Positions 17,571-58,148 of a stretch of 64,000 nt of DNA are shown piece by piece. Positions within the stretch are counted from its first letter, which is position 1, and each line of letters starts with the position of its first letter. Made by a program: the position numbers and the translations under genes. The notes below the pieces were generated by a model. The model was not told the DNA's origin. It did not search any database and saw nothing but the letters and a program-made list of their open reading frames with translations. Location: contig NC_083227.1 in NCBI RefSeq assembly GCF_032191835.1, forward strand, positions 30,256,001-30,320,000. The letters are read 5' to 3'. Source of the DNA: Heteronotia binoei (taxonomy: Eukaryota).

Positions 17571-22005
<4,435 letters not shown>

Positions 22006-29508: not shown

Positions 29509-30189
29509 AGTGTTTTTGTTGTTGCAGCTCCAACACTGGGCAGTTGATTCTTCATCCTGTAAGAGTCAATTTGCAAGAAGGGAAACACCCCCTCACTGCT
29601 TGGGAAAGCAGGGAAACAGGCTGTTCATCTCTCCCTCCCTTTCCTGTAGGCAGCCATGGCTGCTGAGGGTCCCGTGCAGGAGCTCCGGGAGGAAGCCTCT
29701 TGTTCCATCTGCCTGGAGTTATTCAGGGACCTGGTTACCATCGCCGAGTGCGGCCACAACCTCTGTCGAGCCTGCCTGACCTGCAGCTGGGGGGAGGTGG
29801 GGGACCAGCCTTCCTGCCCTCGATGCAGAAGAAAAGCTCGGACCTGGACCTCTTCTGCAAGGAGTCCCTGGACCTCTTCTGCAAGGAGTCCCTGGACCTC
29901 TTCTGCAAGGAGGAAGAAGCTCCCCTATGTGCAATCTGTGCCGTATCCCAGGAGCACAAAGGTCATGAGGTGGTTCCTCTCGAGGAGGTTTTCTGAGAAA
30001 ATAGGGTAAGAAATCTCTGGAGACTCTTTTGCGTCCTTGTGTGTGGGTCAAAACTTTCAATTTGGTACAAAGTTCTCTCAAGCTTAATGTCCTTGCCACT
30101 TGTGGCTGGTAACTTTTAATTAATGTGATATCAAATATAATACATAAAATAATTATAATATATCCTGTAATACTGAGATATATTTAAAA

Positions 30190-30591: not shown

Positions 30592-30869
30592 AGCCAGTTT
30601 GGTGTAGTGGTTAAGTGTACACTTATCTGGGAGAATGGGGTTTGATTCCCCACTCCTCCACTTGCACCTATTGGAATGGCCTTGGGTTAGCCATAGCTCT
30701 CATAGGAGTTGTCCTTGAAAGGGCAGCTTCTGGGAAAGCTCTCTCAGCCCCACTCACCTCACAGGGTGTCTGTTGTGGGTGAAGGAGATAAAGGAGATTG
30801 TATGCTGCTCTGAGTCTCTGATGCAGAGAGAAGGATGGAGTATAAATCTGCAGTCGTCGTCTTCTTCTT
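30592..30869 (+). mobile_element. Squam3-type SINE
   Basis: Full family match. Confidence 0.85.
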
Positions 30870-30924
30870 TCATCAAAAGGAGGGGTTGGCTACCACCTGT
30901 CTTCTTCCTCACCCTGTCCTGGAA

Positions 30925-31430
30925 GAATATGAGAAGCCATGTTGGATCTGGCCAGTGGCCCATCTAGTCCAACACTCAGTATCACACAGTGACCAAAACC
31001 CAGGGGTCATCAGGAGGTCCACCAGCAGGTGCAGATCTCCAGAAGCCCTCCCACTGTCTCCCCACCCCAGCACTAAGAGTACAGAGCATCACTGCCCCAG
31101 ACAGAGTGTTCCCTTTATACTTTATGGCCAATAGCCACTTAAGGACCTTTGCTCTATGTTTATCCAATCCCCCCTTGAAGCTGTCTGCTTATAGGTGCCA
31201 CCACTTCCTGAAGCAGTGAATTCCACATTTTAAATACCCTTTGGGTGAACAAGCACTTCCTTTTATCTGTTCTTTACCTCTGCCTCCACCTCTCTCATGG
31301 CAAAAGCTATAGATTTCTGCTTCATATATTTATCCAACTCCTTCTTGAAGCTATCTATGCTTGTAGCCACCACAACTTCTTGTGGCAGTGAATTCCACAA
31401 TGTTAATTACTTTTTGGGTGAAGAAGAACT
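30925..31430 (-). mobile_element. CR1 3' end fragments
   Basis: GAGAAGCCATGTTGGATC tail plus WNSLP-type coding remnants on the minus strand. Confidence 0.7.
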
Positions 31431-32199
31431 TCCTTGTATCCCACCAGGAGATCACCCTTTGCTGGCAGCCCACTCAGCATTAGTGCTTCACCCAGCCTTT
31501 CAGGAACTGGTGCCATTGAATCCCATTTCTCCCCACTTAGGATGTGATCTTTCCATTATTTTCAGTGGCCGTCCCCTTGGCCCTCCCATACTGAGCTGTG
31601 TACCCAGTCCAAGAGGTTTTGCTGCCCAAGGAAGCCTCTGCCCAGCCCCCCCCCCCCCGCCCCATTCTGATGAAGTGGAGTTTCCAACATTGAGGATCTG
31701 TCATTGTGAATATAAAGGGAGAAGCAGAAGGCAAGAAGATTCTCCATCTTGTTCCTAGAAACCAAGCGCTACACAACTGGCAATGCTGGCTGAGTTAGGG
31801 CTAACTTAGTGCCAAGTGTCAGAGTTGGGACCCAAAAGCTGTTCTCAGTACCAGACTGAAGGCTGATGTCCTTAAACAGAACCTGAGGGCATTCTCCTAT
31901 GAGCAAGATAGCCAGAACTAAGAGCAAGATGGTGACTGTAGATTTGTTGGCTGAAAAGTTTCCATGAGAGTTAAGGGCCTTGCAGGAGATTGGCGGGGGG
32001 TGGGGTTGGGCTTTTTAATCTTCATTCTGAGAATTTAGAAAGGGGGGTTGAAGGGTTTCCAGGTGAAAATGGATCCAGGATGTGAAGGATTTGGTTTGCC
32101 TGGGCTGTCCAGATCAGGGCACAGATGACCCATCACCTCGCAATTCATTGGTGTGCATCAAACCTGGATTTCAACCAAGGCTTGTTGTTGTTGTTTTTT

Positions 32200-32530
32200 T
32201 TAAATATTATTTTATTCGATTTTTTAGCCTGCCCTTCCCATAGAACAGGCTCAGGGTGGGTTACATCATAAAAACAATAAACAGTAAAAAACCAATTTAA
32301 AATATATAAAATCTAAAATTACAAAGTAACAGTAGATACTAAAATGGCAAATTCTGCCTTACAAACATGTCCAGGTCCAGCTGGTCTTATAGCACTAGGG
32401 TGGAATAAAGGGGGGAGGCCAGTAACAAGTGATGTCCACTACATCAGCTGAAAGCCTGGCGAGAGAGCTCTGCTTTACAGGCCCTGCGGAACTGAAGTAG
32501 ATCCCACAGGGCCCAGATCTCCAGAGGCTC
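32200..32530 (-). mobile_element. L2 LINE 3' end
   Basis: Minus strand LLQFRRACKAELSRQAF followed by the L2 tail (CCCTGAGCC...GGGCAGG). Confidence 0.7.
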
Positions 32531-34009
32531 ATGGCTTGTTGTGGCATCGGAATTCACAGATTTTTCAAGCACACTGACCATAGAGATGGCAGATAGGGAC
32601 AATCTCCATCCTAGGGGTAGATGGGAGGGGAGGTAAGAAACAGACAAACGAGGGTTGATACACTAATTGGGATTTTATTACTTGCATTTGGAAAGCTCAC
32701 TAGAGTTTGGTAAGCTAGCTAGAAAGACAAGGGGTAATCATTGCTAGGGAGGAATGTTGCTAATGATGTCATAATTTGTTCCAGAATGTAATACCCAAGT
32801 GCTGGAACATAAGGAAAATTGTTGGTGGGAAAATATAAGCAAGCAGACATCAGTGGATCACTAGAAGGATTCGAATAGATCCCTAGAAGGATCTGAAGGG
32901 AAATGTTCCCAGGGCCCTGAAATGCAAAAGATGCCTGAAATTCAGCTGGGCACAAAAGGTTATTTACTGCAATATATATAATCCATGCTGTGTTATGTTC
33001 ATCTTTATACCAATACAGTCATAAAATAGAATTTTTATATTTTTGTATGGAGGAAGGTGGCAGAGCCCACGAAGGCCCTAGGGCCCACAGAAGTCATAAT
33101 GCAGGCCTGCTCAGAACTCCCTTTCTTCTTCTTCAGTACACCTCTTACAGTTCCCTCACACAGACAGAATAAACCCATAGTGGTACACTTGCTTACATCT
33201 AGCTTTGTGTGTGTGTATAAATTTTAAACTGAACAAGGCAGTAATTATATCCAGTCATTACAAGGAGATGTACAGTTCTAGAACATGGGGAATGAATCCT
33301 GTTTCTTTGTTTTGGGCATCAGGGTGGGAGCTGGAAAAGGAAGAGTTTGCCAGAGCCCCTGAAGCTCTTCTGCAAGAACGATGAATCTTTCATCTGTGTG
33401 GTCTGTGACCGATCTAAGGAGCACAGAGACCACAACACCCTTCCTCTTGAGGAGGTCTCCCAAGAGTACAAAGTAGGAAGTCAACAACACGGAGGATGGT
33501 GAGGAAGAGCTGTGGATCCTCCCCTTCTTCTTTCTCTCTTTGCTGCCTCCTTCCTGGTTTTGTAGCTCCCATTGGCATTGCTTCCTTCCCCCCTTGCTGA
33601 GGCTAAAGTAGGGTGATATGGGGGAATGGATTCCCTTCCTCTCTGGCTGTGTTAAGATCTGGCCAGCCTATGGCATGGCTGAGCTAGGAGGGGGCAGCCA
33701 CCTAACTCCTAGTTTTAACACACACACACCAACACATACTGCTTTTACAATTTCAATTGCTGTTCTTGAGTGTGTTTGCCTCAGGGCGGGGCGGGGGGGG
33801 GGAGAATGTGTTCAGGTTCCTCTCCCACCCCTGCACACAATGAGGTAGCAGTTTTACATCAGAATTACAGCATGGGTCTAATCTTTTATTTGTGGCCAAA
33901 AGTGTCATAGAAAAACACTTGGAAAAACCAGTTGAGCCCACAAATTGACATAAAAACTGTGGAATTTATACATTATGGCAAAAATCACAACTAACTTTTT
34001 TTGTTCCAG

Positions 34010-34870
34010 CTTGGCTTCCTATATTGGAATACTCAAGTACCCCTGGAGCCATTTTGACAATGGAGGCCCAGGTGGTGATCACTGTCAGATCAGCCTTTGA
34101 CCATCTTAGGCGGATAAGGCAGTTGGTTCCCTTCCTTGAATGCAGCAACTTGGCAACTGTGTTCCACGCTACGATCAGTTCCAGACTAGACTACTGTAAC
34201 ATCCTCTACATGGGGCTGCCCTTGTCTCAAATCCAGAAGCTGCAACTGGTGTGGAACGCAGCAGCCAGGTTGTTATTAGAGCTACCTACACGGGAGCATA
34301 TTCAACCTGTGCTGAAAGCACTGCATTGTCTGCCTGTGACATTCTGGATTTGTTTCAAGGTGCTAGTGCTGACCTTTAAAGCCCTATATGACCTGAGATC
34401 TGCCTATCTTCAGGACCGTCTTTCCCCATATGTGCCCCAGAGAGTACTGCGTTCAGGGACCCAAAATCTGGCGATCCCCATGCCAAAGGAGGCCCAGCTA
34501 AGCACCGCCAGGGCTTTCTCCATGGCATCTCCTGCATGGTGGAATGCACTTCCAGACAACATCGGAGCCCTGCGGGATCTCCCGCAGTTCCGCAGGGCTT
34601 GCAAGACAGAATTATTTCACCTTGCGTTCAGCGAATAATGTGGGAGACAGGCAGCTGTCAAGTTGGCAAAGAACTCTGCTTCAGCACTATCTGATGAGAT
34701 CTCTGGATTGCATTGGTGAAGTTATTGCTTATTGATTATGTAATTTTAACTTATTATTTATTCTATAGTAATTTTGATGATTATGTTTCATGTTTTGATG
34801 TTCTTATGGTTTTAATGGCTGTTAGCCACCCTGAGCCCTCCTATAGGGAGGGCAGGATATAAATCCAATA
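34010..34870 (+). mobile_element. L2 LINE ORF2 C-terminus and 3' tail
   Basis: ORF 34024-34638 with SRLDYCN, LHCLPV, FKVLVLTFKAL, WNALP, FRRACKTELF; tail GCCACCCTGAGCCC...GGATATAAAT. Confidence 0.92.
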
Positions 34871-35059
34871 AAGAAAAAGAAAGAAGAGATACCTGATGTG
34901 ATAGAAGAACTTTGTTTATGGTAGAAAACTAGGATGTATTGATCGTCAACCTACGTTACCAACTTCTATATTTAATATGTTATTTTGTGACTTGTTGTAT
35001 TCTGTTTAATTATATAATCAAGTGTTTTTGGGGAAAAAGAATTACAGCATGGGAGGCAG

Positions 35060-35255
35060 GAGAGCTATGCATAAAATTGCCTTATTCTGACCTGTCCGGG
35101 TCCACTCTGACTGGCAGGGGCTCTCCAGGGACTCAGGTGGAGGTCTTTCACATGAACTGCTACTTATTCATTTCAGCTGGAAATGCCAGGCATTGAACTC
35201 AGGACCTTCTGTTGGCCAAGTAGGTGATCTATCACAACCATGGCCCTTCCACTGC
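35060..35255 (-). mobile_element. Squam2-type SINE
   Basis: Degenerate family match on the minus strand. Confidence 0.65.
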
Positions 35256-37015
35256 ACTATGGAAGGAAGGAATCCCCTCCTTCCCACAGCTGCGGTTGCT
35301 TCCGCACAGAGCTTCCCCTTCTTTCATCTGCTCTTTCTTGGAAGATCATCAAAGAGGGTTTGGGAAAGTGTGGACCAAAAAGTATGCATGTCCACCCTCT
35401 ACCACCCCCAATCCAATGCCATTTACCCTCCCGCCTGGCATTCTCCTTCACTCCCCAGTGAACTTTTTGCTGTTTTCTTTTTTATAATTGGCACTAGTCG
35501 ATATATTTTTGTAGTGTTAACACAACATAGTGTTATACCGACCATGTATAATATTTTTAATGCAAAAAACCTCCAAACCCTCCTGTGGTGGGGGTGGAAT
35601 GGTGGGGAAAGCATGGAGTGAATCTCCCCCGAGGAAGCAGTGTGACCTCTGGGAGTATTTCTGCATTGAAGATGGGCACTATTCCCTCGATAAAGTTTGC
35701 TGCATTTAGCATGTCGGAAATGTTGAAGGTCCCGTTATGCATATGGGGCAGATAGATCTAGTTTGGCCCTTAATGACAGTTTCACTTTTTGTATGTTTTA
35801 TAGTAGACTTCAGAAATAGGAAAAAACCCTCAGTTTTGGTCCTTCCCCTGTTCCCCCAGGATCAATTCTGCCGCAGTCTGAAGATTTTGAAAAAGAGAGA
35901 AAAAATTGTGGCACCTAGAGAAGATGTAGAGAAGAAAAGCCAAGAGCTCCTTGTAAGTGTCCCTGTGGCTGGGAAGTGGAGATTCTGAAACTAGTATAGG
36001 GGGTAAACAAAGTCCAAATAGCAGAAAAACCAATCCACACAAGAGCCTCATCCCTTCCAATTTGGACAAACCTTCAAAGATGGTTAATATTCAGGCCCCC
36101 AAAGGTAAACGTAACATTGCAGTTCTAAGCAGAGTTATACTGGGTTAGCTCTTTTCTCCCCTGTGGTATTTCTACTCAGCCATTGTACCTCATCCCCCAT
36201 TGGGAAGTTTGGAGGTTGGCTTGTGAAGAGTGTTTTAGTGGGGGGGGGGGGAATGGACTGAAGAAGACTCTTCTACTCTCTGGGCCTTCTGCTTCAGTCT
36301 GAATCTTCTGTGGCTGAAATAACCCCTCCAGGAGTTTCAGTGAGATCCATGTGAACTTTGGGCCTTAAGGATGGGTCATTGGGAATACTTTCTCTTTCCT
36401 AACTTCACTGTGTTGTGTGTGAGAGGCCACAGTGTCCTTCCAATAGGGGTCTTCTAATGTGCCTCTTCCCACCTCAGAGACCAGCTGTGTTCCTGACACT
36501 GGCCTGCTTTTCTATTCTCCCCATCTTAGAAGCAAACCATAGGAGAGAAGCAAAAGTCATTAGCCAAGTTCAGACAACTGCACATGTTTCTGGAGGAACA
36601 AGAGAAACACTTGCTGGCCTAGATGGAAGAGGTGGAGAAGGAGGTAGCAAGGAACAGGGACCAGCACTTGGCTAGACTTTCTGAGGAACTTTCCTCTCTG
36701 GAAAGCCTCATGCAGGAGATAGTGGAGAAGAGTCAGCAGCCGGCTGGTGATCTCTTGCAGGTGAGAGTGTGGCAAGAACAGGTAGACTGTCTTGGGGAGA
36801 GAGCTTCTGCTGTTCTTCAGAATCCTCATTCTTCAGAGTCCTCATTTGCTCAAGCTGAGAATCAAGAGGCTATGATTCATACTGTTGGTGGTGTGGAAAG
36901 GATGCAGTTCACTGATGCTTCTGTTCTGAGAAGGCATTGATGTACCCTTTGCTAGTGCATTCCTCGTTCATTCAGGAATGTAACACCATATTAAACAGTG
37001 CCTGACCAAAGGGAG

Positions 37016-37086
37016 AACATAAGAGAAGCCATGTTGGATCAGGCCAATGGCCCATCCAGTCCAACACTCTGTGTCACACTGGCCAA

Positions 37087-37121
<35 letters not shown>

Positions 37122-37190
37122 TACACACACACTGTGGCTAATAGCCACTGATGGACCTCTGCTCCATATTTTTATCTAACCCCCTCTTGA
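37016..37190 (-). mobile_element. CR1 3' end with internal (AT)n(AC)n microsatellite
   Basis: Reverse complement of 8000-8170, including the microsatellite at the same internal position. Confidence 0.85.
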
Positions 37191-38703
37191 GCCAGTTTGT
37201 TGTAGTGGTTAAGAGTAGCAGACTTTAACCTGAAAAACAGGGTTTGATTCCTCACTCCTCCACTTGAAGCCAGCTGGGTGACCTTGAATCAGTCACAGTT
37301 CTCTCAGCGAGAATACCCCCCAGCCCTAGCTTGCCACAAAAAAGAATGAGAGTTTCAGGCTGCCAGATTATCTTTGGATCTCCTGGCTATACTATACCCA
37401 TACGATATTTATTATTACTGACCAAAGACCCAGTGGATGCTGTGGGATGACCCTATTGGAGAAGAAGGGATGGCTGTTAGTTGAGTGGTTAGGGAGCTAC
37501 AGGAGATAGATGGAGGAATCTCTGAGGTTTGTGTATGTTTTGAGCAACAAAAAGCAAATCCTTACAAGATTCATAGACAGCCCTTTAAAACAGCCAGAAA
37601 TGAGGGCACTATGCAAGATCTGTAGCAGATCATGCAGCTCTTCTCTGAAATGGCTTCACTTTGCCTGCTGATGTCATTCCCTCATGAAGAGGGTCTCCCA
37701 TTTTATGAAGATCCAGCCCCATCCTTGAGTAGGACATACAAGAAAAGGATTTAAAATGTATTGCTCTCCAGGATATATATGTTTGTGGGGGGGAGTGTCT
37801 TCCCAATTTGGCCCATGGCAATTGTTAGCTTTTCTTTCTTTTCCCTTCTTTAGGATGTCCAAAGCACCTTGCAGAGGTAGGTAGCTCCTTCTCTCTCATT
37901 GCCTTCCTGATGCTGGGATAGATCTGGGTGGTGTGTGAATAAAATGGCCCTTCAGGCTCAGGACCACAACAGACGTGGCTAGGATACAGTTGTAAATGGC
38001 AAACTGCCAATGAACACAGTCCCAAGGACAGAAAATCATGCCCCCAAACTGCAAGGGGGGATGTCGGGGTTAAGACTTGGACATGCACTTCTAGAAGGTT
38101 CTGGTAGTATTCTGATGCTACATCAGGAGGTGGTCTCATTTATCAGAGAAGCCACTCCACCTTTGGACATGCACAGATTGAGTTCAGTCATCTCAGCTCT
38201 TTCAGTTCCACAAAATGGCAGGAGGTAAATGTTATGGTTTCAACTGGTGTCTTGGTTGGCATCTGGGCTACTTAGAGGGCCACTTGAACATCAAGCTCTG
38301 TGATGAAAGCTCTGCCCAGTCTAGGGTGTGCCATGTGTGAGGGAGGCTACTCATGAGGGAGCAGAAGCTTGTGCAATGAGCATTCCCGCCACCACTCAGC
38401 ACTTAAAGGTATTTTCTTGCTCAGACTAAACTAGAGGATTTCCAGGCTGCTGATTGGCCTCTTAGCTGTAACTTTGCCTCTTTGCTGTAACTTTTCCCTA
38501 TTTTTAGAGGAAGGAGCATGCTGTGACATTATTGGGCTTTAAGCTTTCATGCCTCACACAAGCTGCAGGCTATTAAAAGGAGTAGAAGAAAGGAAGCTTT
38601 TGAATGCCATGTAATGTGCTGCAGGGCCGAGAGGGGAAATGAGCTTGGACCCAGTCCTGGCCCAGCTTTCTAACCACTACACCACAGCAGCTTCTCTATC
38701 TAT

Positions 38704-38977
38704 GAAGAAGATATTGGATTTATATCCCGTCCTCTACTCCAAAGAGTCTCAGAGCGGTTCACAATCTCCTTTACCTTCCTCCCCCACAACAGACACCCTG
38801 TGAGGTGGGTGGCGCTGGAGAGGCTCTCACTGCAGCTGCCCTTTCAAGGACAACCTCTGCCAGAGCTATGACTGACCCAAGGCCATGCTAACAGGTGCAA
38901 GTGGAGGAGTGGGGAATCAAACCTGGTTCTCCCAGATAAGAGTCCGCACACTTAACCATGACACCAAACTGGCTCTC
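38704..38977 (-). mobile_element. Squam3-type SINE
   Basis: Full family match. Confidence 0.85.
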
Positions 38978-39119
38978 TGCAATACTGCTTATAGTGCTGT
39001 TGCCTTAAGGAGAAGTTAGAATAAAAAATGATTTTAAAAGACCTTACACAGTATTATCTCTCTTGTATTTGATTATTGCATCTATGAATTTTGCCACTGA
39101 GAGTGAACATATATATGAA

Positions 39120-39370
39120 CACATGAAGCTGTGAGTGAGAGTGAACATATATATGAACACATGAAGCTGCCTCATACTGAATCAGACCCACAGTCCATCA
39201 AAGTTAATATTGTCTACTCAAACTGGCAGTGGCTCTCCAGGGTCTTAAGCTGAGGTTTTTCACACCCAGTTGCCTGGACCCTTTGTAGTTGGAGATGCCA
39301 GGGATTGAACCTGGGAGTGGACCTTCTGCTTACCAAGCAGATGCTCTATCACTGTGCCATCGTCCCTCCC
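39120..39370 (-). mobile_element. Squam2-type SINE
   Basis: Family match; tail partly duplicated at 39105-39170. Confidence 0.7.
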
Positions 39371-41653
39371 ACGATCATTAGTATCTGACAGCAACCATAT
39401 GGCTTGCACACTCAGCAATTCCATATTTTTAAGTAAAGAGGTGACAAAATTAGCCCTCAACTCGTTAAATATAGGGCACTCCATAATCATATGTTTGATA
39501 GTTTCACAGTAGCTTGCTTCTTTCCCTAGACAGATGTGAGGCAAGACTGAAGGGCTGCTGCTGTTAGGCAAAAAAATCCGTTCCTTTTGATGTTTGATTT
39601 AGCCTTAAGATACATGGCTTTGGGGTCTCAAGAGTAACTGCAAAGAAGTAGACTCTCTTCTCTCCAAAGGGCCTCCCCTCTTTCTCTGCTGTTAGCCACA
39701 CAACCATCGTCTCTAGGCCTTTTGTGTATTCCTGCATTTCTTTGCTCTGCTTATGGGAATTCTGGATTGGATAGATGGTGGCTTAACATGGTTTGTCTCC
39801 AGGTATGAAGAAAAGGAGATCTCTGAGAATCCAGTGACTTTTCCTCTTGCATTGAAATGGAGGATCTTGGACTTCTGTGACATCAATCACTTGCTGGAAG
39901 GTGTCATGAAGCAGATGAAAGGTAATAGAGAAAAGCTTTAGAGATTTCATTAGGTGAGTTCAGGTATGAGTGTGGAACCTTGCCGATCACTTTGTGTCAC
40001 TCACCGGGCCATTTGGACAGGGGATTCATATGCCAATTCTGAAAGTCATTTTAGTTCTCCATGGAATGTTTTCTGATCAAAATTCCTCCAGTGGCTTTAG
40101 CACACTTCTGTATTCTCTTGATTTTTTTACAGTGCTAATTCCCACTACTCCCCCACCTTTCATGTTTTCCCAGGCTCAGAGCATTTTATATTTCTTTAGT
40201 TTCTGTGATCCTTGTGCTTTTTCTTTGTTTTAGTTCCAGTTCCAGTAACGTTTAATGGCATACCAGTTTTATTTTAAAAATTGCATTGCTGAATCCCACT
40301 ATTCCCCCACCTTTCCATTATTAACAAAATGCCGCAAGAGTTTTAAGCATGTTTGTATTTTTAGTTAAGACATTATATTTTAATTGTGTTTGCCTTTGTC
40401 CTTTATAAAGTTTATATCTCTGCTACCTCACATTACAGTTTATGTCACACATGGCCTGGCCCCACAACGTCCCATTTGTGTCACATCTGGCCCTTCTCAC
40501 GAATGACTTTGACACCTCTGGCCTTAGCATACTTTCTGTGAAGCATGTCTAAAGTAACTCAAAGCAGATAACTTCTAGATAACCTTGTTCAGGATCACTG
40601 TTGGGTCTCCATTAGTAGTAAAGTGTCAGGTTGCCAAATGTGACCAATTTTTCCTTTGTGGTCTCAGTCAAGCTTCAGCCTTAATTAGGAACCGAGAAAA
40701 AATTCATATTAAGTGTAAACAAATGTAAATATCTGCACACCAGTAAAAATTTGGAGAGACTTCATCCTTGAAGTGGCTGCTCCTTAATCCTTCAGCTAAA
40801 ACAGACAAAATGTTGCTAACTGATCATCTGCTTATTTTCTGTTCCATTCACTTCCTTAGACAATCTGGATTCTGGACTTCATTTGCAAAAAGGTACACTT
40901 TGTGCACAAATCAATTATTTCTTAACTAAAAAGCTTCTCCTCACAAACTGTGTTGTTTTACTTGGTGTTTCTCCAGTGACAAGATTCCCTGGACACGCTT
41001 GTTTTGTCCCTCCAAACCTCTGAATGTGGAGGTTCCTTTCAATGATCATGGCTAGTAGCCCTTGGCAGGCATCTCCTCCATGAATCTGTCTAATCATTCT
41101 TTTAAAGCCATCACTATTCCTCTGGAGCAAGTTCCATGGTTTTTTTCACTGGTTGAGGAAAGAATTGCTTCCTTTTGTCCTATCAATTGTAGCATGGTCC
41201 TGGTTCTCTCTAGAAGTCACAGGTATCTGGTTCACACCCAGAATGCAGAATTTTATTAGTAAACTACTAAAAAAAAATAGAAGTCACAGGTATCTGCTTC
41301 ACACACGGAGTTTCAACAGAATATAGATCTCGCTCTTCTTCCATTCCCCAAGTTTCCTGGACTGTGAAGCAGAGAAACTATTATGGGAGTGTTTTTGGTT
41401 TTGTTTTAGGTTTTGTTTTAAGGGGGACAGCTGAAATGACAGGCAAGCAAGGATATATACCTATTAAAACAAATAATTACACGTTTGGAGGATATTTTTG
41501 TAAGTCCTCCGCTAACCTTTAGCTGAGATTTCAGACCCATTCCAATCAGAGATAGAGAAATTCTGGCCAAAGGAGGAAAACCTCCAAATCCTGAATGAAA
41601 TCCTAATGATCTGAGCAAGAATCTAATTCTTGGGATACATCTAGGATCAGGAC

Positions 41654-41846
41654 CAATGCTCCCTCTAAGCTGCAGAGTCTTGTGAGTAAAAATTCGACTT
41701 TGTGAACTACTGGCATTAAAGTTGTGAGCTCCTGCATAAATTATTGTGCTCTGGGGTCATCCGTCCTGAGTGAAGACAAAAATGTGTGAGCTGGAAGCTA
41801 AAAATCTGTGAGCTAGCTCATACTAACTAGCTTATAGGGAACACTG
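41654..41846. mobile_element. hAT MITE specific to paralog A intron 7
   Basis: Perfect TSD ATCAGGAC at 41646-41653 and 41847-41854; the homologous site in paralog B (about 57250) is empty. Confidence 0.88.
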
Positions 41847-43009
41847 ATCAGGACTAGATCCACTTTGCATGTTTAATCCATTCTTTCATCAGTTCATTTT
41901 CATGTGATCAAGTTGTTTGTGTAAATGCTCTCCCACATGTGATTTTTGCTTTTGTCTAAGCAACCAACCAGGTCAGGGAGAGCCATGGGGAACAGACACA
42001 CCTGGGATACTAATAATAGATTCAGGTGTGTGTGGGAAACAACTCTGCCATTTGTCTCTCAGATGAACCGGCTTCACTTCTGTTTTCTTCTCCTCCCAAC
42101 AGCAAATGTGACTCTGGATCCTGACACAGCCCATCTCAAACGCATCCTCACTGAGGATCGGAAAAGTGTAAGAAAAGGAGAAAAGGCTCAACCTCTACCC
42201 AACAATCCTCAAGAGATTTGATGAATATTCCTATGTACTGGGCCGTGAGGGATTCAGAGCAGGCCACCATTTCTGGGAAGTCCTTGTGGGAAGTGAGGAA
42301 GAATGGGATGTGGGGGTGACCAGAATGTCTGCGAGGAGGAAGGGAGTGTTCCTCTTTGGTCCTGAGGAAGGATTCTGGGAGGTGGGGAAATATGAGGGCC
42401 ACTTTAGGGCTGCAGTAGAAGATAGTAACCTGACCCTGAATGGAGAGCTCAAGAGGATCCGAGTGTGCCTGAACTACCTTGGGGGGCGAGTGGCTTTTTT
42501 TGATGCTGACCGAGCAGCCCTAATCTATGAGTTCTCTGGAGTCACCTTCACTGGAGAGACCCTCTTGGCCTCCTTTAGGGTGCATTTGAAAGGCCACCTC
42601 CAACTTTGTTAAGACAGTCATTTTGTACCAGGGCCATTAACAAAACAATTCGGACATTTATTTACACTTATGCCAATGTTTATGTAAGATTATTTTCTGT
42701 TACGTAATTATGTTCTGTTATGTATAATTATTTTCTTTCATAGAAATATTATAATTTTTTTCTGTTTGTAAAAATTACACAAATTATATTTTTAAAAAGA
42801 CTCCTGTTTTGTAGTTCTGCAAAAGGTCTTCTCCAGGGTCTCGATCAGCAAAACTGATAAATAAAATTGAGTCTCTACAAGTTAAGGGGAAAGAAGGCAT
42901 CAGTGTCTGTTCCAGCAGACAAGGTAACAGTTCCTCAGACCAAGACAGCTGCTGTTTTCCTCTGGGAAGGGTGTTGGCTGCACATTTTTCCTTTTAAAAA
43001 TGAAAGTCA

Positions 43010-43842: not shown

Positions 43843-44204
43843 GCTCCTTTCTCTTCAGTCCGGGAGGGAGGGGGGGAGGCATCCAGCGGCAGACTGGTGA
43901 TCTGTTACCCCGCCTAGAGACAGCCTCCTTGCAAACGCCTGGGATGCAAAGGAGGAAGAATCTCCATCCCAAGGCGCTTTCTCCAATCTAGGCTCTGTGG
44001 CTCCAGCATCCAGGGCTTGAGTTCAGTTGCCGGAAGCGGAAATTCTCCGTCGCTGCTTAGTGAGAAAAAGAAAGTATTACTTTCCCTTCTCTTTCTCGAG
44101 GAAGGGATTTAGCGTCATCCCGGAGTCATTTGCCTGAAGTGGAAATTCTCCGTCGCTGCTTAGTGAGCAAACGAGAGCAAGTGTTTCGCTTTCTCTTCCG
44201 TGAT

Positions 44205-44285
44205 GGAGCTTTGCGAGGAAGCTGCCTGGACTTTTGCAGGGACCCGTGGGTGACCATTGCCGAGTGCGCCCACAACTTCTGCTGA
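44205..44285 (+). pseudogene. RING-domain fragment of a lost TRIM exon 1
   Basis: GAGCTTTGCGAGGAAGC / TGCCTGGACTT..GACCCG.GGTGACCATTGCCGAGTGCGCCCACAACTTCTGCTGA aligns to 45667-45753 with internal deletions. Confidence 0.75.
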
Positions 44286-45642: not shown

Positions 45643-48600
45643 ATGGCAGCTGAGGATCCCGTGCAGGAGCTCCGGGAGGAAGCCTCTTGCTCCATCTGCC
45701 TGGACTTCTTCAGCGACCCGGTGACCATCGCCGAGTGCGGCCACAATTTCTGCCAAGCCTGCTTGACCCGCAGCTGGGGGGAGGCGGGGGCCCAGCCTTC
45801 CTGCCCCCAATGCAGAGGAAGGGCTCAGAAGAGGAAGCTCCGGCCGAACCAGCTGCTGGCCAACTTTGTGGAGATCATTAAGAAACTCCGTTCTTCGAAA
45901 GAGACGGGGAGAGTCTGCGAGAAGCACCAGGAGCCCTTGGAGTATTTCTGCAAGGAAGACGAAGCCCCCCTTTGCCTGATCTGCGGGGTATCCCAGGCGC
46001 ACAAAGATCACCAGGTACTTCCTCTGGAGGAGGCGATCAAAGAAAACACGGTGAGAAATCTCTGGAGGAAGGCTCCTTTCTCCCAATGTGCGGCTCAAAA
46101 CTTCACTTGGGTGCAGTGGTCTCTCAAGCTTAGGGTTCTTTGCTGCATATTGGCTTGTAACGTTTAATAAAAGAAGAATTGCAGATTTATACCCCGCCTT
46201 TCTCTCTGAATCAGAGACTCGGACCTGCTTACAATCTCCTCTGTCTTATTCCTCCCACAACTGATACCCTGTGAGGTGGGTGGGGCTGAGAGGGCTATCA
46301 CAGCAGCTGGCCTTTCGAGGATAACTCCTGCAAAAGCTATGGCTGACCCAAGGCCATTCCAGCAGCTGTAAGTGGAGGAGTAGGGAATCAAACCGGGTTC
46401 TCCCAGATAAGAGTCCGCACACTTAACCACTACACCAAATTAATGTGATATTAATATATTATTTCTTCCCCTGTCAGCCACAAAATGGCTTGCAATGCAG
46501 CAACTAGTAATAAAGGGATCAAAAAGGTGTTTGAGGGGAGGGTTTTCATCGTGATTGTAGGGGCTGACTGCCTCCTCTCTTCCTCACCCCATCCCACCAG
46601 AAGATCACCCTTTGTTCATAGCCCTCTCCAAACTGGTGCCCCACCCAGCCTTCGCTGAGAAGTGGCCATTAGGTGCGGAACCTGTGCCACAGAATCCCAT
46701 TTCTCCCCACTTAGGGTGTGGCCTTTCCATTCTTTTCAGTGGCCCTCCCCTGGGCCCTCCCATACTGAGACTGAGGTGTGTGGCCAGTCCAAGAGGCTTT
46801 GCTGCCCAAAGAGATCTCTGTAAAAGGCCTCCAAATGTTGGTCTTTGATGAAGTGGGATTTCCAACATTGTGGATCTGTGATTGTTAATATGAAGGAAGA
46901 AGCAGAAGGCAAGAAGAGTCTATCTTGTTTCCAGAAACCAAGCACTACATAGCTGGCATGGTCAGGGCTAACTTTGTGCCAAGTCTCATAGTGAGGACTC
47001 AGAGCCTGTTCTCAGAGCCAGGTTGAAGGCAGAAGTCCTTAAATAGAGAATTTGGAAAGGGGAGCTAAGAGTTCTCCACAAGGAACCCACAGGTGCCCTC
47101 CATACTGAATCCTTCTGGATCCAGGATGTGAAGGAATGTCTTGTTTTGTTGTATTTTAAAATACAGAAGATTTAAGATCCAAGGAAGACAAAATTCCAAA
47201 GCAAACACGATGAGCCGATACTCATCCTGAAGTGAGTTAACTTAACTCACTTAACTTAAAAATGAATCCTGTGTCTTTGTTTTGGGCATCAAACTTAACT
47301 CACTTCAGGATTGGTATCGGCTCGTCGTGGCTGTATCAAAATCCAGAATTGTCATGCATTTGTCTGGAGGGCCACCTAGGAGATGTTGTCTGTGAGGGAC
47401 AGGACATTCTGGTTGGGATTTAAATCTAAAATTTGTCTTAAAAACCTATCAGAGTCCATCACGTTCATGCAGTTCCAGCTTCACTACCTAACAGATTTGG
47501 ATCCACTTTTGGAGGCTTGTCGTCATAGGCTCCCAGGAATGTGAAAGAAATGAATAGTGTGGTATATGGAAGTTCCTCTGGCACAATGCAAATGGCAGCT
47601 CAAAGCACGTGCAGGGAGAATGTGGTTTACTAGGAAAAGGGAGTTCTGATTTGTTCATTGACCTCCAAAAGAATTGGAGGTTTTATATAAGTTCTGTAAT
47701 CCTGTTTCTCCCAACATCCCCAGCTGAGGGAGGACCTGAGTTTGTTAATGAAAAGAGGGATTACAAAAAGAGAAGGCAGTAGTGTCTGCAGCCCACTGGT
47801 CTCCACTTTCTAAGAGGTAGGATGGCTAGCAGGCAAAAAATGAACACTTAAAAAAACAGCTCTCAGACCCGTCAGTCACTGGCAACCATTTATAAGTAGA
47901 ACTTAAAATACAAGTAGAGTTTAGTCCAAAATGGAAGGGTGAGGAATGAAAGCAAGACACATGTATAGCAAACTCCATTGTAGGCAATGCAACTGAAAGT
48001 GTGAACCCAAGAGGGGATGAGAATCTTTCCCAAGTCTCTCACTCTTTGTCTGCTACGGCTTGGATGACTGTAGTGCTGCTGCTCCTCTTGGGGCTTTTGG
48101 TACAGCTGCAGATCTTCAGAGACTGCAGCTCTCTTGAGGCTTCCCTGTTCCCTGCACCACAGCCTAGATGGCTTCTCCTTCCTTTCCCTCAGAACTCTCT
48201 TCTTCAGTACCTCTCCTACAGCTCACTCACACAGATCAAATAACTCCCTCCTCCAGCTCCAACAGAGCGCAAACCCAGAGGGGTACACTTGGTTACAACC
48301 AGTACAGTTCTGTGAGGAAAAATGAATCCTGTGTCTTTGTTTTGGGCATCAGGCAGTGGTGGTAGCCAGAAAAGGGAGAGTTTGCCAGAAGCACCAGGAG
48401 CCCCTGAAGCTCTTCTGCAAGGACGATGAAGCCCTCATCTGTGTGGTCTGTGACCGATCCAAGGAGCATAGAGATCACGAAACCCTTCCGCTTGAGGAGG
48501 CCTCCCAAGAGTACAAGGTAGGAAATCAATATGGAGGATGGTGAGGAAGAGCCATGAACCCTTTCCCTCTTCTTGGTCTCTTTGCTGCCTCCTTCCTGGC

Positions 48601-51600
48601 TAGGTGGCTCCCTCAGGTATTGTCTCGTTCCCACCTGCTGAGGCTAAAGCAGTGTGATAGAGGAAGATGGAATTCCTTCTTCTCTGGCTGGGTTAACATC
48701 TGACCAGTAGATGTCTAAAATGGGGAGGAGATGGAATCTCAGGTGTGATGTTCCTCCTTCCCCCCCCCCCATGGGAAAATGTTTTTGAGGGTCTTGTTGC
48801 AGACATGGGGCAGTTCTACCTAATTTGGCCCTTGATAGTCTTGTTTCTCATATGTTTTATAGTAAACGTCTAAAATGGGAAAAAAACCTCAGTCCCCCGT
48901 CCCCCCCACTTTCTGTTCCCCCAGGATCAGTTCTGCAGCTGTCTGGAGATTCTGAAGAAGAAGAGAGAGAGAATTGCAGGATATAGAGATTCTGCAGAGA
49001 AGGAAAGCCAGGACCTGCTTGTAAGTGTCACCATGGGTGAGAAGTGAAGAGTCTTTGGAACTAGTATGGGGGGGCGGGGTGACAAAGTTCATAAGGGCAG
49101 AAAAATAAACCCACACAAAACCCTCACCCCTTCCAAATTGGACATTGATTCACAGGTGATCAGTATTTAGCAGATCTCCTTCCCATGTTCATTGTGATCT
49201 CTTTAAAAGGCTAAAATGCCCTTCCGATAGGGGTCTCCTAATGAGCCTCTTCCTACTGCAGAGACCAGCTGTTCCTGATGCTGGCCTGATTGTCTTCTTT
49301 TCCCATCTCAGAAGCAAACCACAGAAGAGAAGCAAAAAACATTAGCCAAGTTCAGGCAGCTGCATGTGTTTCTGGAGGAACAAGAGAAGCACCTGCTGAC
49401 CCAGATGGAAGAGGTGGAGAAGGAGATAGCAAGAAACAGGGACCAGCAACTTGCAAGACTCTCTGAGGAACTCTCCTCTCTTGAAAGCCTCATGCAGGAG
49501 ATGGAGGAGAAGAGTCAGCAGCCATCAACTGATCTCCTGCAGGTGAGAATGTGGCAGGAACAGACAAGCTCCCCTTGGGAGAAGGTTGACTCCAAATCCT
49601 TTTCCAGCTTCTGCTGTTCTCTTGTGCCGTCCTTTGCTCAGGCTGAGAATCAAGAGGCCATGACTCATAATGTTGGTGGTAGGGGGGAGGGTTGAGTTTG
49701 CTAATGCCTGTGTTCCAGAAAGACATCAAAGTACCTTATTTGGTGTGACCCTCATTCAATAGGAAAAGTGGCACCATTTTAGTCACTTGGTGAGTGACTG
49801 AAGGTCTAGAGCAGGGGTGGGAAACCTCTGTCCCGAGGGCCGTATACGGCCCTCGAGGTCACTTGGTGCGGCCCTTGGGGATTGCTGGGCCGAACTGAGC
49901 TATGTGGCAGCCTTCCTGGGGCCTGGCTGGCCGACCAGAATTGCTGCAGGACCTAGAAAAGTTACTGTCACAGTTCAGTTTGCACTTGATTTCCCAGATG
50001 GTGTCGCCTAATATGCTAATGAGTGTGTAACCTAATATGCTAATATTAGGGGATGTGGTCTAATATGTTACTGAGTTCCTGCTGGGCTTTTTCTACAAAA
50101 AAGCCCTGGACCTATCATTTGCCTAGGGCGGTGGGCCGTGTGTGTGTGCCAGATTAGGCTCTTCCCTCATGACTTAAAATAGAAAAACAATTACTTGCAT
50201 TAATTTTGCTGGCCTGAATTATTCTCCCTTGGCAGAGCACTGTTTTTTAAATTGATAATTTTTATGGCCTGCAAATTATGTTATAAATATCCATATGGCC
50301 CTTGGCAGAAAAAAGGTTCCCCACCCCTGGTCTAGAGGAAGTTCTTGGATGATTCAAGCGGAGAAGGAGGGATGGCTGTTATTTGAGTGGTCAACTACAG
50401 GATGGAGGAATTTTTGAAGTGTTTGTATTTGTATGTGTATGTTTTTGTGATTCATGGGTAACTCTTCAGGACAACCAGAAATTGTGCAAGATATTCTGTA
50501 GCCTTCTTCGTCAGACACTTCTTTAATGGCGTTACATTGTTTGCTCATGTTCTTCCCTCATGAAGTTCTCCCATTTTATCAAGATCCAGCTCCCATCCTT
50601 GAGTTGGGCATACAATTAAAGTTCGAATGTATTGTCCTCCAGGATCTGGGCGGGGGGAGGAGTCTTCCCAATTTGGCCCAAGTCAGTGACTGGCTTTTCC
50701 TTCTTTTCCCTTCTTTAGGATATCCAAAGCACCATGCAGAGGTAAGTGGGTCCCTCTCTCTCATTACTCTCCAGATGGTGGGATGGATCTGGGTAGCAAG
50801 TAAAGAAAGTGTCCCTTCTGGCTCAGGACCACAACACATGATTATGATCACAGATTTCCATCTGTTTGTAAATGGAAAACTATAGATAAACCCAAACCCA
50901 TGGACAGAAAACCATGCCCCCAAACAGCAGGGGTGGTGGTTGTCAGTGTTACGACCTGGCTGTGTATCTCTAGAAAGTTCTGGCAGAATTCTGGTGCTGA
51001 AGCAGAGCTGGTTTTACTTGCCAAACAAGCCTGTATGGGTTGAGATCAGTCACCTCAGCTCTTTCAGTTTCACAAAATGGCAGGTGGTCAGTGTTATTGG
51101 ACTCAGCTGGTGTTTTGGTTGGCATCTGGGCTGCTTAGAGGGCCATTTGAGTGTCAAGCTCTGTGATGAAAACTGCCCAATCTAGGGTGTGCTGTGTGGG
51201 AGGGAGGCTACTCATGAGGAAACAGAAGCTGAGGCTTGTGCCATCAGCATTCCTGCTGCCTCATAGTACTTAACAGGTGCTGCTCTTTCTTAGACTAGAG
51301 GCTGTCATGGCTGATGATTGGAAACTTTGCCTCTCTGCTGTACATTTCCCCAGACATTTTTACAGGAAGGAGCATGTGACATTATTGGGCTTGAAGTTTC
51401 CATGCCCCACAGAGGTTGCAGGTGATTTAAAGAAGCAGAATCATAAAGTTGGAAGGGTCCTTCAGGGTCATATAGTCCAGTGTCCTGCAGAATGCAGGAA
51501 ATTCACAAATGCCTCCCCTACACACTCACCTCCAGTGACCCCTGCTTCATTCCCAGAAGACAGCAAAAAAAAACCCTTCTAGGATCCCTGGCTAAACTGG

Positions 51601-54600: not shown

Positions 54601-57600
54601 TGGATATGCTTAGGTCATTTTAATTTCCTTCATGGTCTTTTCTCTTAATATTTTTGCACTTTAATAAATCATATTTTTAAACTTTGTTTGGATTCTTATC
54701 TCCTGTAAGCTCAAAGGCCTAAATCCAGAAGCCCAGGACCAGACCACCTCCTGGGTAACGTTTTAGTTTTAGAAACTCAGGCTGCAGTCCTACCTTGCAT
54801 GGCTGACTTTCTTGTTAATTCTCTGAGAGGCCAAGAAGCTTGTCTTTTCACACCTGTGTTGTGGGCATAGTCAGAAAAGACTGATAAAAGATACCTAGTC
54901 TAGAGTGAGAATTAGTCTCTTTCTGGTATTTTGTAACTTGCTTTGCCTTTCTTACCTTACCAAGGTCTTCTCATCCTAGGCTTGGGGTGAGCAAGACCTT
55001 GACAGGGACTTTCCCTCTTTCTCTGCTATCAGCATTATTAGTGTCTCTAGGCCCTTTGTGCATTTCTGCCTTCATTTCTTTGCTCTACTGGTGGGAACTC
55101 TGGATTGGATAGAGGGTGGTTTAGCATTGTTTCTCTCCAGGTATGAAGAAAAGGAGAGGTCTGAGAAACCAGTGACTTTTCCTCTTGCATTGAAGTGGAG
55201 GATCTGGGACTTCCGTAACATCAATCACTTGCTGGAAAGGGTCCGGAAGCAGCTGCAAGGTAATAAAGAAAAGCTTCAGAGATATCATTGTGTGAGGCCA
55301 TATATAAGTGTGGAACTTTCCAGGTCACGTGTATGACTAGCAGGGCCAGGTGGACAGGGAATTTGTATGCCAGTTCCAAAAGTTCATGGAAAGTTTTCTG
55401 ATCAAAATTCCTCCTGTGGCTTTAGCACACTACTTCATTATCTGGATTTTTTCACAGCGGGTTTGCATTTTGATCATTTGGTCATTCCTGCTGTGCCCAT
55501 TCATTGCTGAACTGCGATGTTAGGGCAGAACAGGCCTAATACAAATTAACAGTATAAAATGTTTCCATTATTTATATTTGTCATTTTTTTAAATGATTCA
55601 TTGCCAGATATAAGAAGAAATGTGTAGCCTGACCCTTCAAGAATTCTACTAATTCCAGCACAGTAGCATTATAATGAACTGCTGAAAGAGGGAAAGAACT
55701 GCTGACATGATTTTTTCAAATAAAAAGTCTCTAGCCCTTTTCATGGCAGGGAAATAAGAGATTCACCTTCCTTTTTGCATTTCAGCAACAAAAGAGTTTA
55801 GACACTCTTTAAAGTAAATAAAAGTTGGGAATTCAGAGGAACTACTAGTAGTATAGAAAGTAGTGTGTGTGAGAAGGGGAAATAACAGCCACTGGGAAGA
55901 AGGAGGCAAGTTAAAAGTGGGACATTGAGAAATGCAACCTTCTTTCAGCATAGCATAAAAAAATGCCTTTTGGCTGCAATCATTCCAAAAAGATTGTATC
56001 AAACAGAGTTTGGGAATGTGCAGAGGAGAAATCTCAGGAAGTGGAGGATTTGGTGACAACATTGTGTGGGTCTTCCCGAAAGCCCACTGCAGTTTGGATG
56101 CAAAACTTCTGTGTGGAAACATCCTAAGCGTCTCTGGATTGGATTTCTGGGCTGCAGTCATTAACATACTTTCTGCGAAGCAAGTCTGAAGTCATTCAAA
56201 GCAGTTAACCCCTGGATAACCACGTTCAGGATCACTTTTTTCTCCTTTAATGGTTAAGTGTCAGTTTGCCAAATGTGTTCCGTTTTTCCTTTATGGTCTC
56301 AGTTCAACAGCCATAATTAGGAACAGAGAGCAAACTCATATTAAGTGTAAGCAAATTTGAATATTTGCACATCAGTAAAATTTGGGGGAGATTCATCAGT
56401 GAAGTGGCTGCTGCTTAACCCATCAGCTAAAGCTGAGAAGAAATGTTAACTGATTGCTTGTTTTCTGTTCCATTCATTTCCTCAGACAATCTGGATTCTG
56501 GACTTCACCTGCAGAAAGGTACATTTTGTGCATAAATTTAATTATTTCTGAGCTTAAAAGCTTGCCCTCACAATCTGTGTTCTTCTACTTGAGTGTTTCT
56601 TCAGTAATAAGATTCTGTAAACACTCTTGTTTGTCCCTCAAAACCAGTGGATGTGGAGGGTCCCTTTAGTCTCCAGGGCTCGTGGCCACTGACAGACATC
56701 TTCTCCATGAATCTGTCTAATCCCCCTTTTAAAGCCATCTATGCCCATGGCCATCACTATATCCTCTGGCAGCAAATTCCATGTTTTATTCACTAGTAGA
56801 TTAAAGAAATATTTCCTTTTGTCCAGTCAATTGTAGCATGGTCCTGAAGCCCCTGTTTCTCTCTAAAAGTCACAGGCATCTTGTGCATACACAAAGTTTC
56901 AAAGGAATGTAAATCCCACTCTCCTTCCATCCCCCAAGTTTCCCCTGCTGTGAAGCAGAGAAACAATTATGGGAGTGTTTTCAGCTATGTTTTAAGAGAG
57001 ACACCTGGAATGATAGGAAAGGAGGAATTTATAAATTTTAAAGCAAAAAAATGACAGGTTGGTTTAGGGTCTGGAGGAGGATTTTTGTAAGCCCTTGGTC
57101 AATCTGTTGCTAGCTTTAGCTGAGATTTCAGACCCATTCTAATCAGAGAAGGAGAAATTCTGACCAAAGGAGAAAACATCCGAATCCCGAATGCATCTTT
57201 GGAAATGTTAAAGATGTGAGTAGAAGTGTCATTCTTGGGATACATGTAGGGTTAGGACTAGATCCATTTTGCAAGTTCAACCTTTCATTGGCTCATTTTC
57301 ACTTGATCAGCAGTTTTGTTCATAATGGCAGAGGAGATACACAATGATCCGTGTTTCCCTCTCAAGGTGCCTCTTTGATAAAGGATTAGAGGGACAGGCT
57401 TTGTTCACCTGGGTTCTTACTTTCTCTCCAGGCCCAGGAAGCCTGTTCTTCCTTCCATAAAATTAAAAAGAAGAAAAGTGAAACAGAAAAAGCCACAGTA
57501 GGAGAAATGTCTAAACAACCAACCAGATCAGGGAAATCCATAGAGAACAAATATACCTGGGACACTAACAACTAACAACAACATTGCCAGTTGTCTCCCT

Positions 57601-58148
57601 GCTGAACCTGTTTCCTTCTGCCCTCAACAGCAGCAAATGTGACTCTGGATCCAGACACAGCCCATCCCCAACTCATCCTGTCTGAGGACTGGAAAAGTGT
57701 GAGAGAAGGAGAAAAGGCTCAAGTTCTGCCCAAGAATTCTAAGAGATTTGACCATTTTTGTTGTGTTCTGGGCAATGAGGGATTCAGAGCTGGCCACCAT
57801 TTCTGGGAAGTCCTTGTGGGAAGTGTGGAAGAATGGATGGTGGGGGTGGCCAAGAAGTTTGTGAGGAGGAAGGGAACGTTGTCCTTTAGCCCTGAGGAAG
57901 GGTTCTGGCTGGTGGGGAGATGGGGGGGCCATTACAGAGCTTCCATAAAAGGCTGCTATTCTCCCCTGACCCTAAGCAGAGAGCTCAAGAGGATCCGGGT
58001 GTGTCTGAACTACACTGGGGGACGAGTGGCCTTTTTTGATGCTGAAAGAGCAGCCCTTCTCTATGAGTTCTCTGGTGTCTCCTTCTCTGGAGAGACCCTC
58101 CTGCCCTTCTTTTGGGTGCATTTGAAAGGCCACCTCCAACTTTGTTAA
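45643..58148 (+). CDS. Intact TRIM E3 ligase (TRIM39/TRIM27-like class), RING-Bbox2-Bbox2-coiled coil-PRY/SPRY, 529 aa
   Basis: Exons 45643-46050, 48353-48517, 48925-49020 (96 nt), 49312-49542 (231 nt), 50719-50741 (23 nt), 55141-55259, 56486-56518, 57634-58148. All introns are GT-AG; 1590 nt open; C3HC4 RING; [11 protein letters not shown] and SPRY WEVLV motifs; AATAAA at 58175-58180. Confidence 0.92.
46172..46439 (-). mobile_element. Squam3-type SINE
   Basis: Full family match. Confidence 0.85.
47206..47329. repeat. Palindrome with a templated insertion in its loop
   Basis: 35-bp arms 47206-47240 and 47295-47329 (3 mismatches); 47258-47291 is identical to 48318-48351. Confidence 0.85.
49812..50329. 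mobile_element. hAT (Charlie-like) MITE
   Basis: TIR CAGGGGTGGGAAACC / GGTTCCCCACCCCTG; perfect TSD GTCTAGAG at 49804-49811 and 50330-50337. Confidence 0.9.
51430..53800 (-). mobile_element. CR1 3' fragment split by a hAT insertion (pieces 51430-51949 and 53737-53800)
   Basis: Minus-strand reading GCHIE|[15 protein letters not shown] is continuous across the insertion. Confidence 0.8.
51950..53736. mobile_element. 1.79-kb non-autonomous hAT element with internal cargo, copy 1
   Basis: Ends TAGCGTTTCCCA / TGGGAAACCCTG; perfect TSD CTCTATAT at 51942-51949 and 53737-53744; no transposase motif recognised. Confidence 0.85.
54056..55010. mobile_element. About 0.95-kb insertion specific to paralog B intron 5, solo-LTR-like
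   Basis: Absent at the homologous site of paralog A (about 39670); GGACT at both junctions; AATAAA near 54663; ends in TGACA. Confidence 0.45.

Follow-up and report, generated by a model that had tools for sequence, protein, structure and literature searches.

Predicted class IV TRIM genes with two tandem type-2 B-boxes in Heteronotia binoei and other geckos

The window analysed here comprises 64,000 nucleotides (nt) of the Heteronotia binoei genome (RefSeq assembly GCF_032191835.1, contig NC_083227.1, positions 30,256,001 to 30,320,000 of the forward strand) and holds two TRIM paralogs, termed A and B. Judged by its sequence, paralog B is probably a functional class IV TRIM E3-ligase gene with the domain order RING, B-box2a, B-box2b, coiled coil and PRY/SPRY, and a member of a large gecko-wide subfamily. 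The predicted protein shows all the sequence features typical of a class IV TRIM ligase and, beyond these, one additional B-box of type 2 (B2). Textbook TRIM proteins carry either a type-1 box (B1) together with a B2 or a B2 alone. In the nomenclature of the family, B1 stands before B2 and a single box is a B2.

Gene structure and domain composition

The exons of paralog B are listed in Table 1. A six-frame pattern scan places the first box (box a, CEKH-x7-CKED-x4-CLIC-x5-HKDH) at 45916-46011 in exon 1 and the second (box b, CQKH-x7-CKDD-x4-CVVC-x5-HRDH) at 48383-48478 in exon 2. With Pfam zf-B_box (cut-off 24.1 bits), exon 1 reaches 46.6 bits and exon 2 reaches 53.9 bits. Exon 1 also encodes a C3HC4 RING, found by regular expression at 45688-45813 and by Pfam zf-C3HC4_2 with 46.8 bits (cut-off 27). 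Exon 2 (48353-48517) follows an intron of 2.3 kilobases (kb) and opens at a polypyrimidine-AG acceptor. It is flanked by AG and GT, has phase 0-0, and its last encoded residues are EEASQEYK. All exons after it have GT-AG borders. Box b adjoins the coiled coil and shows the full type-2 ligand pattern, the features by which the B-box of a class IV TRIM is recognized. Two statements of a first-pass annotation, made from the letters of this DNA, are thereby confirmed: the gene has two tandem type-2 B-boxes with exactly these motifs, and the second one lies on a symmetric 165-nt exon that precedes exons of 96, 231 and 23 nt.

The gene is already modelled in RefSeq with both boxes, as "E3 ubiquitin-protein ligase TRIM7-like" [Heteronotia binoei] (XP_060094068/69/71). 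Every exon translation from the window is an exact piece of XP_060094069.1 (isoform X2; P0170), including the junction of exons 1 and 2 between the boxes. This database protein stood in for the gene product in full-length comparisons, and the exons were searched singly. On the full protein, Pfam gives a RING, two zf-B_box stretches and a C-terminal PRY/SPRY (B30.2) region (PRY 83.6 bits, SPRY 54.3 bits). Three RefSeq isoforms (X1-X3) are found in the 90% cluster, and exon 2 is kept in all of them; a transcript joining exon 1 to the 96-nt exon is not among these three annotated isoforms. X1 and X2 are one alanine apart owing to a NAGNAG acceptor of the last exon. X3 uses a donor at 46014|46015 and loses the 12-residue linker that separates the boxes.

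Both boxes are of type 2

Box a fits the B-box type 2 pattern C-x2-H-x7-9-C-x2-[CDHE]-x4-C-x2-C-x3-6-H-x2-4-[CH]. The solved structures nearest in sequence to both boxes are type-2 B-boxes, namely those of TRIM41 and TRIM39, TRIM21 B-box2 and TRIM5 B-box2, and the best matches of box a are TRIM41, TRIM39 and TRIM21 B-box2. When aligned to the tandem boxes of MID1 (2jun), both gecko boxes match the B2 half only (box a: residues 59-101). An assignment of box a to type 1, as suggested by its position, was rejected: its first ligand pair is CxxH and not CxxC, its spacing and its 2jun match are those of a B2, and at the DNA level it is a duplicate of box b. The segments 45907-46072 and 48374-48541 share 75% DNA identity, and their alignment extends about 22 nt beyond both donors into the introns. 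Since the homology passes both splice donors, the duplicated unit comprised the 3' end of an exon 1 and the adjoining donor.

Distribution among geckos and other squamates

The 55-residue translation of exon 2 was used as query in an exhaustive profile-free search, which returned 1515 proteins. All of the 12 best matches show two matched stretches, and those looked up by name are gecko proteins. XP_060094069.1 was among the matches of a word search for which the two-box region of a full-length leopard-gecko member served as query. A hidden Markov model built from B-box segments was then run on all fetched proteins, and proteins with boxes 40-70 residues apart were counted as two-box proteins. 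The counts are lower bounds, as they cover the best 120 to 150 matches of each search.

At least 69 two-box proteins were found, isoforms included. Of these, 65 belong to seven gecko species, three are skink isoforms (Tiliqua scincoides, at least 3) and one is of unassigned source (P0017). The gecko proteins comprise at least 13 from Heteronotia binoei, 12 from Gekko japonicus, 11 from Sphaerodactylus townsendi, 10 from Euleptes europaea, 8 from Gekko kuhli, 7 from Eublepharis macularius and 4 from Paroedura picta, and thus cover the families Gekkonidae, Sphaerodactylidae and Eublepharidae. A free-standing 165-nt exon with AG and GT flanks, located between exon 1 and the 96-nt exon, is also present at the locus of one gene each in Sphaerodactylus (L001 2988-3152) and Eublepharis (L002 3681-3845). 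In the three gecko families, exon 1 and the box exon lie 1.5-2.3 kb apart and both frames are open. The layout thus appears, from sequence, to be older than the split of these families. In current annotation, the two-box architecture is hidden under names such as TRIM7-like, TRIM39-like, TRIM11-like and TRIM52-like.

Most two-stretch matches outside geckos were rejected as true B2-B2 proteins, being fused gene models that have two RINGs or widely spaced boxes. Two further candidates, Pogona P0189 (a low-quality model) and the fish protein P0109, carry different, unrelated internal B-box duplications. The Tiliqua scincoides model was likewise rejected as a fixed B2-B2 gene, being a read-through of neighbouring paralogs.

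Several gecko models deviate from the common pattern. XP_060094968.1 (P0152), from another locus of Heteronotia binoei, has three tandem B-box2 units (three stretches in Pfam), and its exon 1 is common to two-box isoforms with slightly different downstream exons. Either an exon was duplicated once more, or tandem copies were joined in this model. In Paroedura picta, P0230 and P0237 combine a gecko-type B-box exon and gene body with an exon 1 from another type of TRIM (box CSRHEHELSFFC), which suggests swapping of exon 1 within arrays.

Selective constraint

The ratio of non-synonymous to synonymous substitution rates (dN/dS) was calculated by the Nei-Gojobori method among genes of Heteronotia, Sphaerodactylus and Eublepharis, on segments of 138-165 nt. 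It amounts to 0.03-0.16 for exon 2 (box b; dS 0.46-0.86) and to 0.28-0.49 for box a. Between Heteronotia and Sphaerodactylus, exon 2 differs at 12 synonymous and 2 non-synonymous sites. Among the two-box proteins listed, all eight zinc-ligand positions are filled in 66 of 69 copies of box b and in 55 of 69 copies of box a. The branches of the B-box tree (see below), very short for box b and long for box a, agree in direction with dN/dS. Both boxes are under purifying selection; box a evolves several times faster than box b and mostly retains the eight zinc ligands. As exon 2 is open, keeps its ligands and shows low dN/dS across three families, it is most likely translated.

Origin of the extra exon

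In gecko one-box paralogs, the stretch "..LQEGKE-AVVAARKGGVCQKH...EEASQEYK" lies within exon 1 and is residue-for-residue collinear with exon 2. Because of this collinearity, exon 2 appears to represent the last 165 nt of an exon 1 that ancestrally encoded one box, and box b appears to be the original B2. A B-box tree was reconstructed from 50 alignment columns. There, a single group with all gecko genera and three families unites 45 of the 50 gecko box-a sequences (SH-like approximate likelihood ratio test, SH-aLRT, 87), and the box b sequences are mixed with the boxes of those gecko paralogs that have one box.

The following sequence of events is proposed. The 165-nt exon would derive from an ancestral exon 1 with a single box, of which it comprises the linker "AVVAARKG..", the B-box, the end "EEASQEYK" and the donor. 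Exon 1 of an upstream tandem copy may have begun to splice into an AG inside exon 1 of the downstream copy. Subsequent decay of the RING-coding part of the downstream copy would then leave a free-standing exon. No RING-like coding remnant was found in intron 1 (46051-48352), and neither an ATG-initiated frame nor a start codon was found upstream of exon 2 within the window. The lack of both argues that the arrangement is fixed in the gecko window.

A possible earlier stage is seen in the skink. The Tiliqua scincoides Gnomon model splices exon 1 (L003 501-923) to 8771-8938 via an internal ..cttcag|G acceptor. This "second box exon" is the 3' part of the exon 1 of the next tandem paralog, with an intact Met-RING-linker in frame before it, and the model continues into a third gene. 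The locus looks like a starting or intermediate state of the gecko architecture, with the splice known from the gene model alone.

Two further sequences near exons 1 and 2 were observed. Intron 1 contains a palindrome (47206-47329) that bears in its tip a 31-34-nt copy of the stretch just 5' of exon 2 (48321-48353). In paralog A, this stretch has a counterpart of 97% identity at 33291-33321, and the copy at the palindrome tip ends ..catcaaac, without an AG acceptor. A degenerate RING-coding fragment (CLDFCRDPWVTIAECAHNFC) is located at 44196-44282, 1.4 kb upstream of exon 1, with 85% DNA identity to 45696-45753. It probably goes back to a further exon 1 that once lay between the two paralogs.

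Structure prediction and proposed roles of the boxes

Residues 1-305 of XP_060094069.1 were modelled as a monomer with AlphaFold2, based on an alignment of 46 two-box gecko proteins. The mean predicted local distance difference test score (pLDDT) is 81, and box b (about 87) is predicted with higher confidence than box a (about 76). Both boxes are predicted to share the topology strand-strand-helix-strand. A short helix (128-142) after box a links the boxes, with confidence falling at 135-143, and box b runs directly into a 109-residue helix (183-291, pLDDT 93-97). Structure prediction had been suggested as a check in the first-pass annotation; it returned the same B-box topology for both boxes and no confident inter-domain geometry.

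Roles for the boxes can be proposed by analogy to what is established for TRIM5alpha, TRIM21 and MID1 (in part PMC5533445). Box b would keep the canonical B2 roles, namely to pack where the antiparallel coiled-coil dimer ends, to self-associate and to regulate the RING. Box a could be a B1-like spacer or a second interaction module that lengthens the distance between RING and coiled coil by about 55 residues, and it may add or modulate a surface for self-association or RING contact. The protein as a whole might be a pathogen-facing ligase like its PRY/SPRY relatives. The relaxed but real constraint on box a is compatible with a module that is required but has freedom to diverge. A wider reading remains tentative and is rather doubtful at present: that a TRIM architecture outside the scheme "B1 then B2, or B2 alone" became fixed and expanded in geckos, and that box a in the B1 position has gained a function of its own. 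Such a function might consist in a second self-association surface or in a RING-regulating module that alters higher-order assembly or activation.

Alternative explanations

The 165-nt exon could be a cassette whose alternative inclusion yields one-box and two-box proteins, as the first-pass annotation had supposed. Owing to its length and phase it can be skipped in frame, joining "..EEAIKENT" to "DQFCSC..", and alternative splicing is annotated by RefSeq at the same junction (donor 46014). However, skipping occurs in 0/3 RefSeq isoforms, which vary at the exon-1 donor and the NAGNAG acceptor instead. Exon 2 is moreover the most constrained N-terminal part of the gene (dN/dS 0.03-0.16; ligands complete in 66/69), and the strength of this purifying selection argues for a constitutive exon. 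Skipping would also remove the canonical coiled-coil-proximal box and leave the faster-evolving copy alone, so that a cassette exon is quite unlikely. It is very improbable that the two-box protein exists in gene models only, with exon 1 as a separate truncated gene and exons 2-8 as a RING-less one. Models of this kind do exist in TRIM arrays: the Tiliqua model fuses three genes, Euleptes P0001 is a low-quality fusion, and the H. binoei isoforms P0152 and P0192 have the same exon 1 and different bodies. In paralog B, by contrast, the window holds no start codon, RING remnant or alternative first exon upstream of exon 2, which opens at a proper polypyrimidine-AG acceptor. The arrangement of exon 1 and box exon (1.5-2.3 kb, frames open) recurs in three gecko families, and the decayed paralog A has an identical layout.

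The two-box layout may also have arisen not once, in an early gecko, but many times independently, or have been remade repeatedly by gene conversion in tandem TRIM arrays. Several observations agree with this: the two skink boxes are mutual closest relatives (SH-aLRT 95), with the second-box exon still inside an intact exon 1; the box a sequences of P0006 and P0153 cluster with single boxes of lacertids; the exon 1 of P0230 is of a different type; and unrelated internal duplications of the B-box are known from the fish and Pogona proteins. Yet the single group of 45/50 gecko box-a sequences spans three families, and the 165-nt length, the phase and the boundary residues of the exon are equal in Heteronotia, Sphaerodactylus and Eublepharis. 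Recurrent origin is therefore considered unlikely. The reading of paralog B as a functional two-box ligase gene of a gecko-wide subfamily is preferred, and the following points weigh against it. Inclusion of exon 2 rests on RefSeq models and on selection. The dN/dS segments are short (138-165 nt), and the genes compared may be paralogs, not orthologs. Most forks of the 50-column tree are not resolved, and support for a single origin is moderate. Cases such as P0230 and the three-box P0152 suggest recombination or mis-joining of exon 1 and gene body in tandem arrays. Finally, the predicted template modelling score (pTM) of 0.33 does not allow the RING and the two boxes to be placed confidently with respect to one another.

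Paralog A and further features of the window

Paralog A (29656-42609) shows the same exon order as paralog B, with 72-87% DNA identity. Its linker and the first half of its box a have given way to 2.9 perfect tandem copies of a 24-nt unit (29843-29912). From the lesions listed in Table 1, paralog A is classified as a decayed pseudogene. The first-pass annotation had stated that paralog A shares the two-box layout, which would hence predate the duplication. This stands, and the layout seems to be even older than the split of the three gecko families; as a gene, though, paralog A has decayed. An interspersed repeat of about 260 nt (76-83% identity) is found in intron 1 of paralog B (46171-46439) and in or around paralog A at 28953-29209, 38705-38968 and 30598-30852 (minus strand).

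Upstream of the TRIM pair, a 613-residue open frame with a long C2H2 zinc-finger array (20164-22005, plus strand) indicates a zinc-finger gene. Several reverse-transcriptase-like open frames at 4852-8044 (plus strand) are consistent with fragments of a retrotransposon of the long interspersed element (LINE) type. An assembly gap of 258 N is located at 11928-12185.

Table 1 Coding features of paralogs B and A (positions within the window)
Feature	Position	Strand	Remarks
Paralog B, exon 1	45643..46050	+	Start codon ATG at 45643; RING, linker, box a, tail; donor GT at 46051; equals residues 1-136 of XP_060094069.1
Paralog B, alternative in-frame donor	46015..46016	+	CAG|GT after codon 124; RefSeq isoform X3; drops the 12-residue inter-box linker
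Paralog B, exon 2	48353..48517	+	165 nt, phase 0-0; box b, the canonical coiled-coil-proximal B-box
Paralog B, exon 3	48925..49020	+	96 nt; start of the coiled coil
Paralog B, exon 4	49312..49542	+	231 nt; coiled coil; 100% identity to residues 224-300 of XP_060094069.1
Paralog B, exon 5	50719..50741	+	23 nt
Paralog B, exon 6	55141..55259	+	119 nt
Paralog B, exon 7	56486..56518	+	33 nt
Paralog B, last exon	57634..58148	+	PRY/SPRY and stop codon; NAGNAG acceptor (57631, isoform X1; 57634, isoform X2); 57634-58145 matches XP_060094069.1
Paralog A, exon 1 (pseudogene remnant)	29656..30009	+	RING intact; frameshift, TGA before the donor
Paralog A, B-box exon (pseudogene remnant)	33324..33472	+	10-nt deletion; first CxxH ligand pair lost and frame shifted
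Paralog A, remaining exons	35788..42609	+	96-nt exon open; 231-nt exon with in-frame stop; PRY/SPRY exon with frameshift

Discussion

Set against the textbook scheme of B1+B2 or B2 alone, a lizard clade emerges with dozens of intact B2+B2 TRIM genes, retained for about the age of crown geckos. The same fold occupies two positions, one conserved and one free, which provides structural biologists with a ready contrast. The proposed origin is instructive in its own right: the first exon of one tandem copy would have captured, by splicing, part of the first exon of the next copy, and the skink locus seemingly represents a middle stage. If box a has a function of its own, the family would be a natural experiment on how the number and type of B-boxes set the geometry and avidity of TRIM lattices. 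Unless box a proves to have a new function, the accepted view of TRIM action is unchanged. Domain scanners report such proteins as "two zf-B_box" only.

The sequence and the gene model are already public and the architecture is common in gecko annotation, but no paper describing it was found. The first-pass annotation had allowed that the architecture might turn out to be common and already described in reptile TRIMs. The former is the case, with at least 69 proteins and a RefSeq model containing both boxes; the latter is not, as far as the papers found can tell. Neither B2-B2 TRIMs nor the architecture of gecko TRIMs was found described in the literature search, a weak negative given its thin coverage of subscription journals. 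The phrase "two B-box2" in PMC5533445 was rejected as a precedent, since it refers to two dimer structures.

Comparison with known TRIM proteins

Among the closest known groups are the harbiTRIMs, antiviral class IV TRIMs of squamates that occur in tandem arrays with signs of gene conversion and of which leopard-gecko members have been tested (PMC12262214). Like the gecko family, they are lineage-expanded squamate genes for RING-B-box-coiled-coil-PRY/SPRY proteins. They are, however, drawn with a single B-box, and a doubled box is not mentioned (PMC12262214).

MID1/TRIM18 (2jun), a B1-B2 protein, has two zinc-binding boxes between RING and coiled coil, as has the product predicted for the gecko gene, in which box a takes the B1 position. 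In contrast to the first box of MID1, gecko box a has type-2 ligands (CxxH...CxxD...CxxC...HxxH), and its DNA duplicates that of box b with 75% identity. In Tiliqua scincoides (XP_066471509-11, "TRIM10-like"), an exon 1 encoding RING and B2 is spliced to a separate exon with a second B2, as in the gecko gene. Unlike there, the second-B2 exon forms the 3' part of exon 1 of the following paralog, an exon that is intact and has kept a Met and a RING, so that the skink model is chimeric or intermediate and not fixed.

Among solved structures, the best sequence match of box b is the B-box2 of TRIM5alpha (5k3q, 5eiu, 5f7t, 5iea; E 1.4e-11). The B-box2 of TRIM5alpha drives higher-order assembly on capsids. 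The class IV TRIMs TRIM7, TRIM39, TRIM27 (RFP), TRIM11 and TRIM41 likewise consist of RING, B-box2, coiled coil and PRY/SPRY and have coiled-coil exons of 96, 231 and 23 nt. The end of the B-box-coding exon, "EEA.QEYK", is common to this group and the gecko gene, and the RefSeq names of the gecko two-box proteins are taken from class IV TRIMs with a single box. These relatives contain one B-box2, which lies inside exon 1, whereas the gecko gene has an extra B2 ahead and carries the canonical box on a 165-nt exon of its own.

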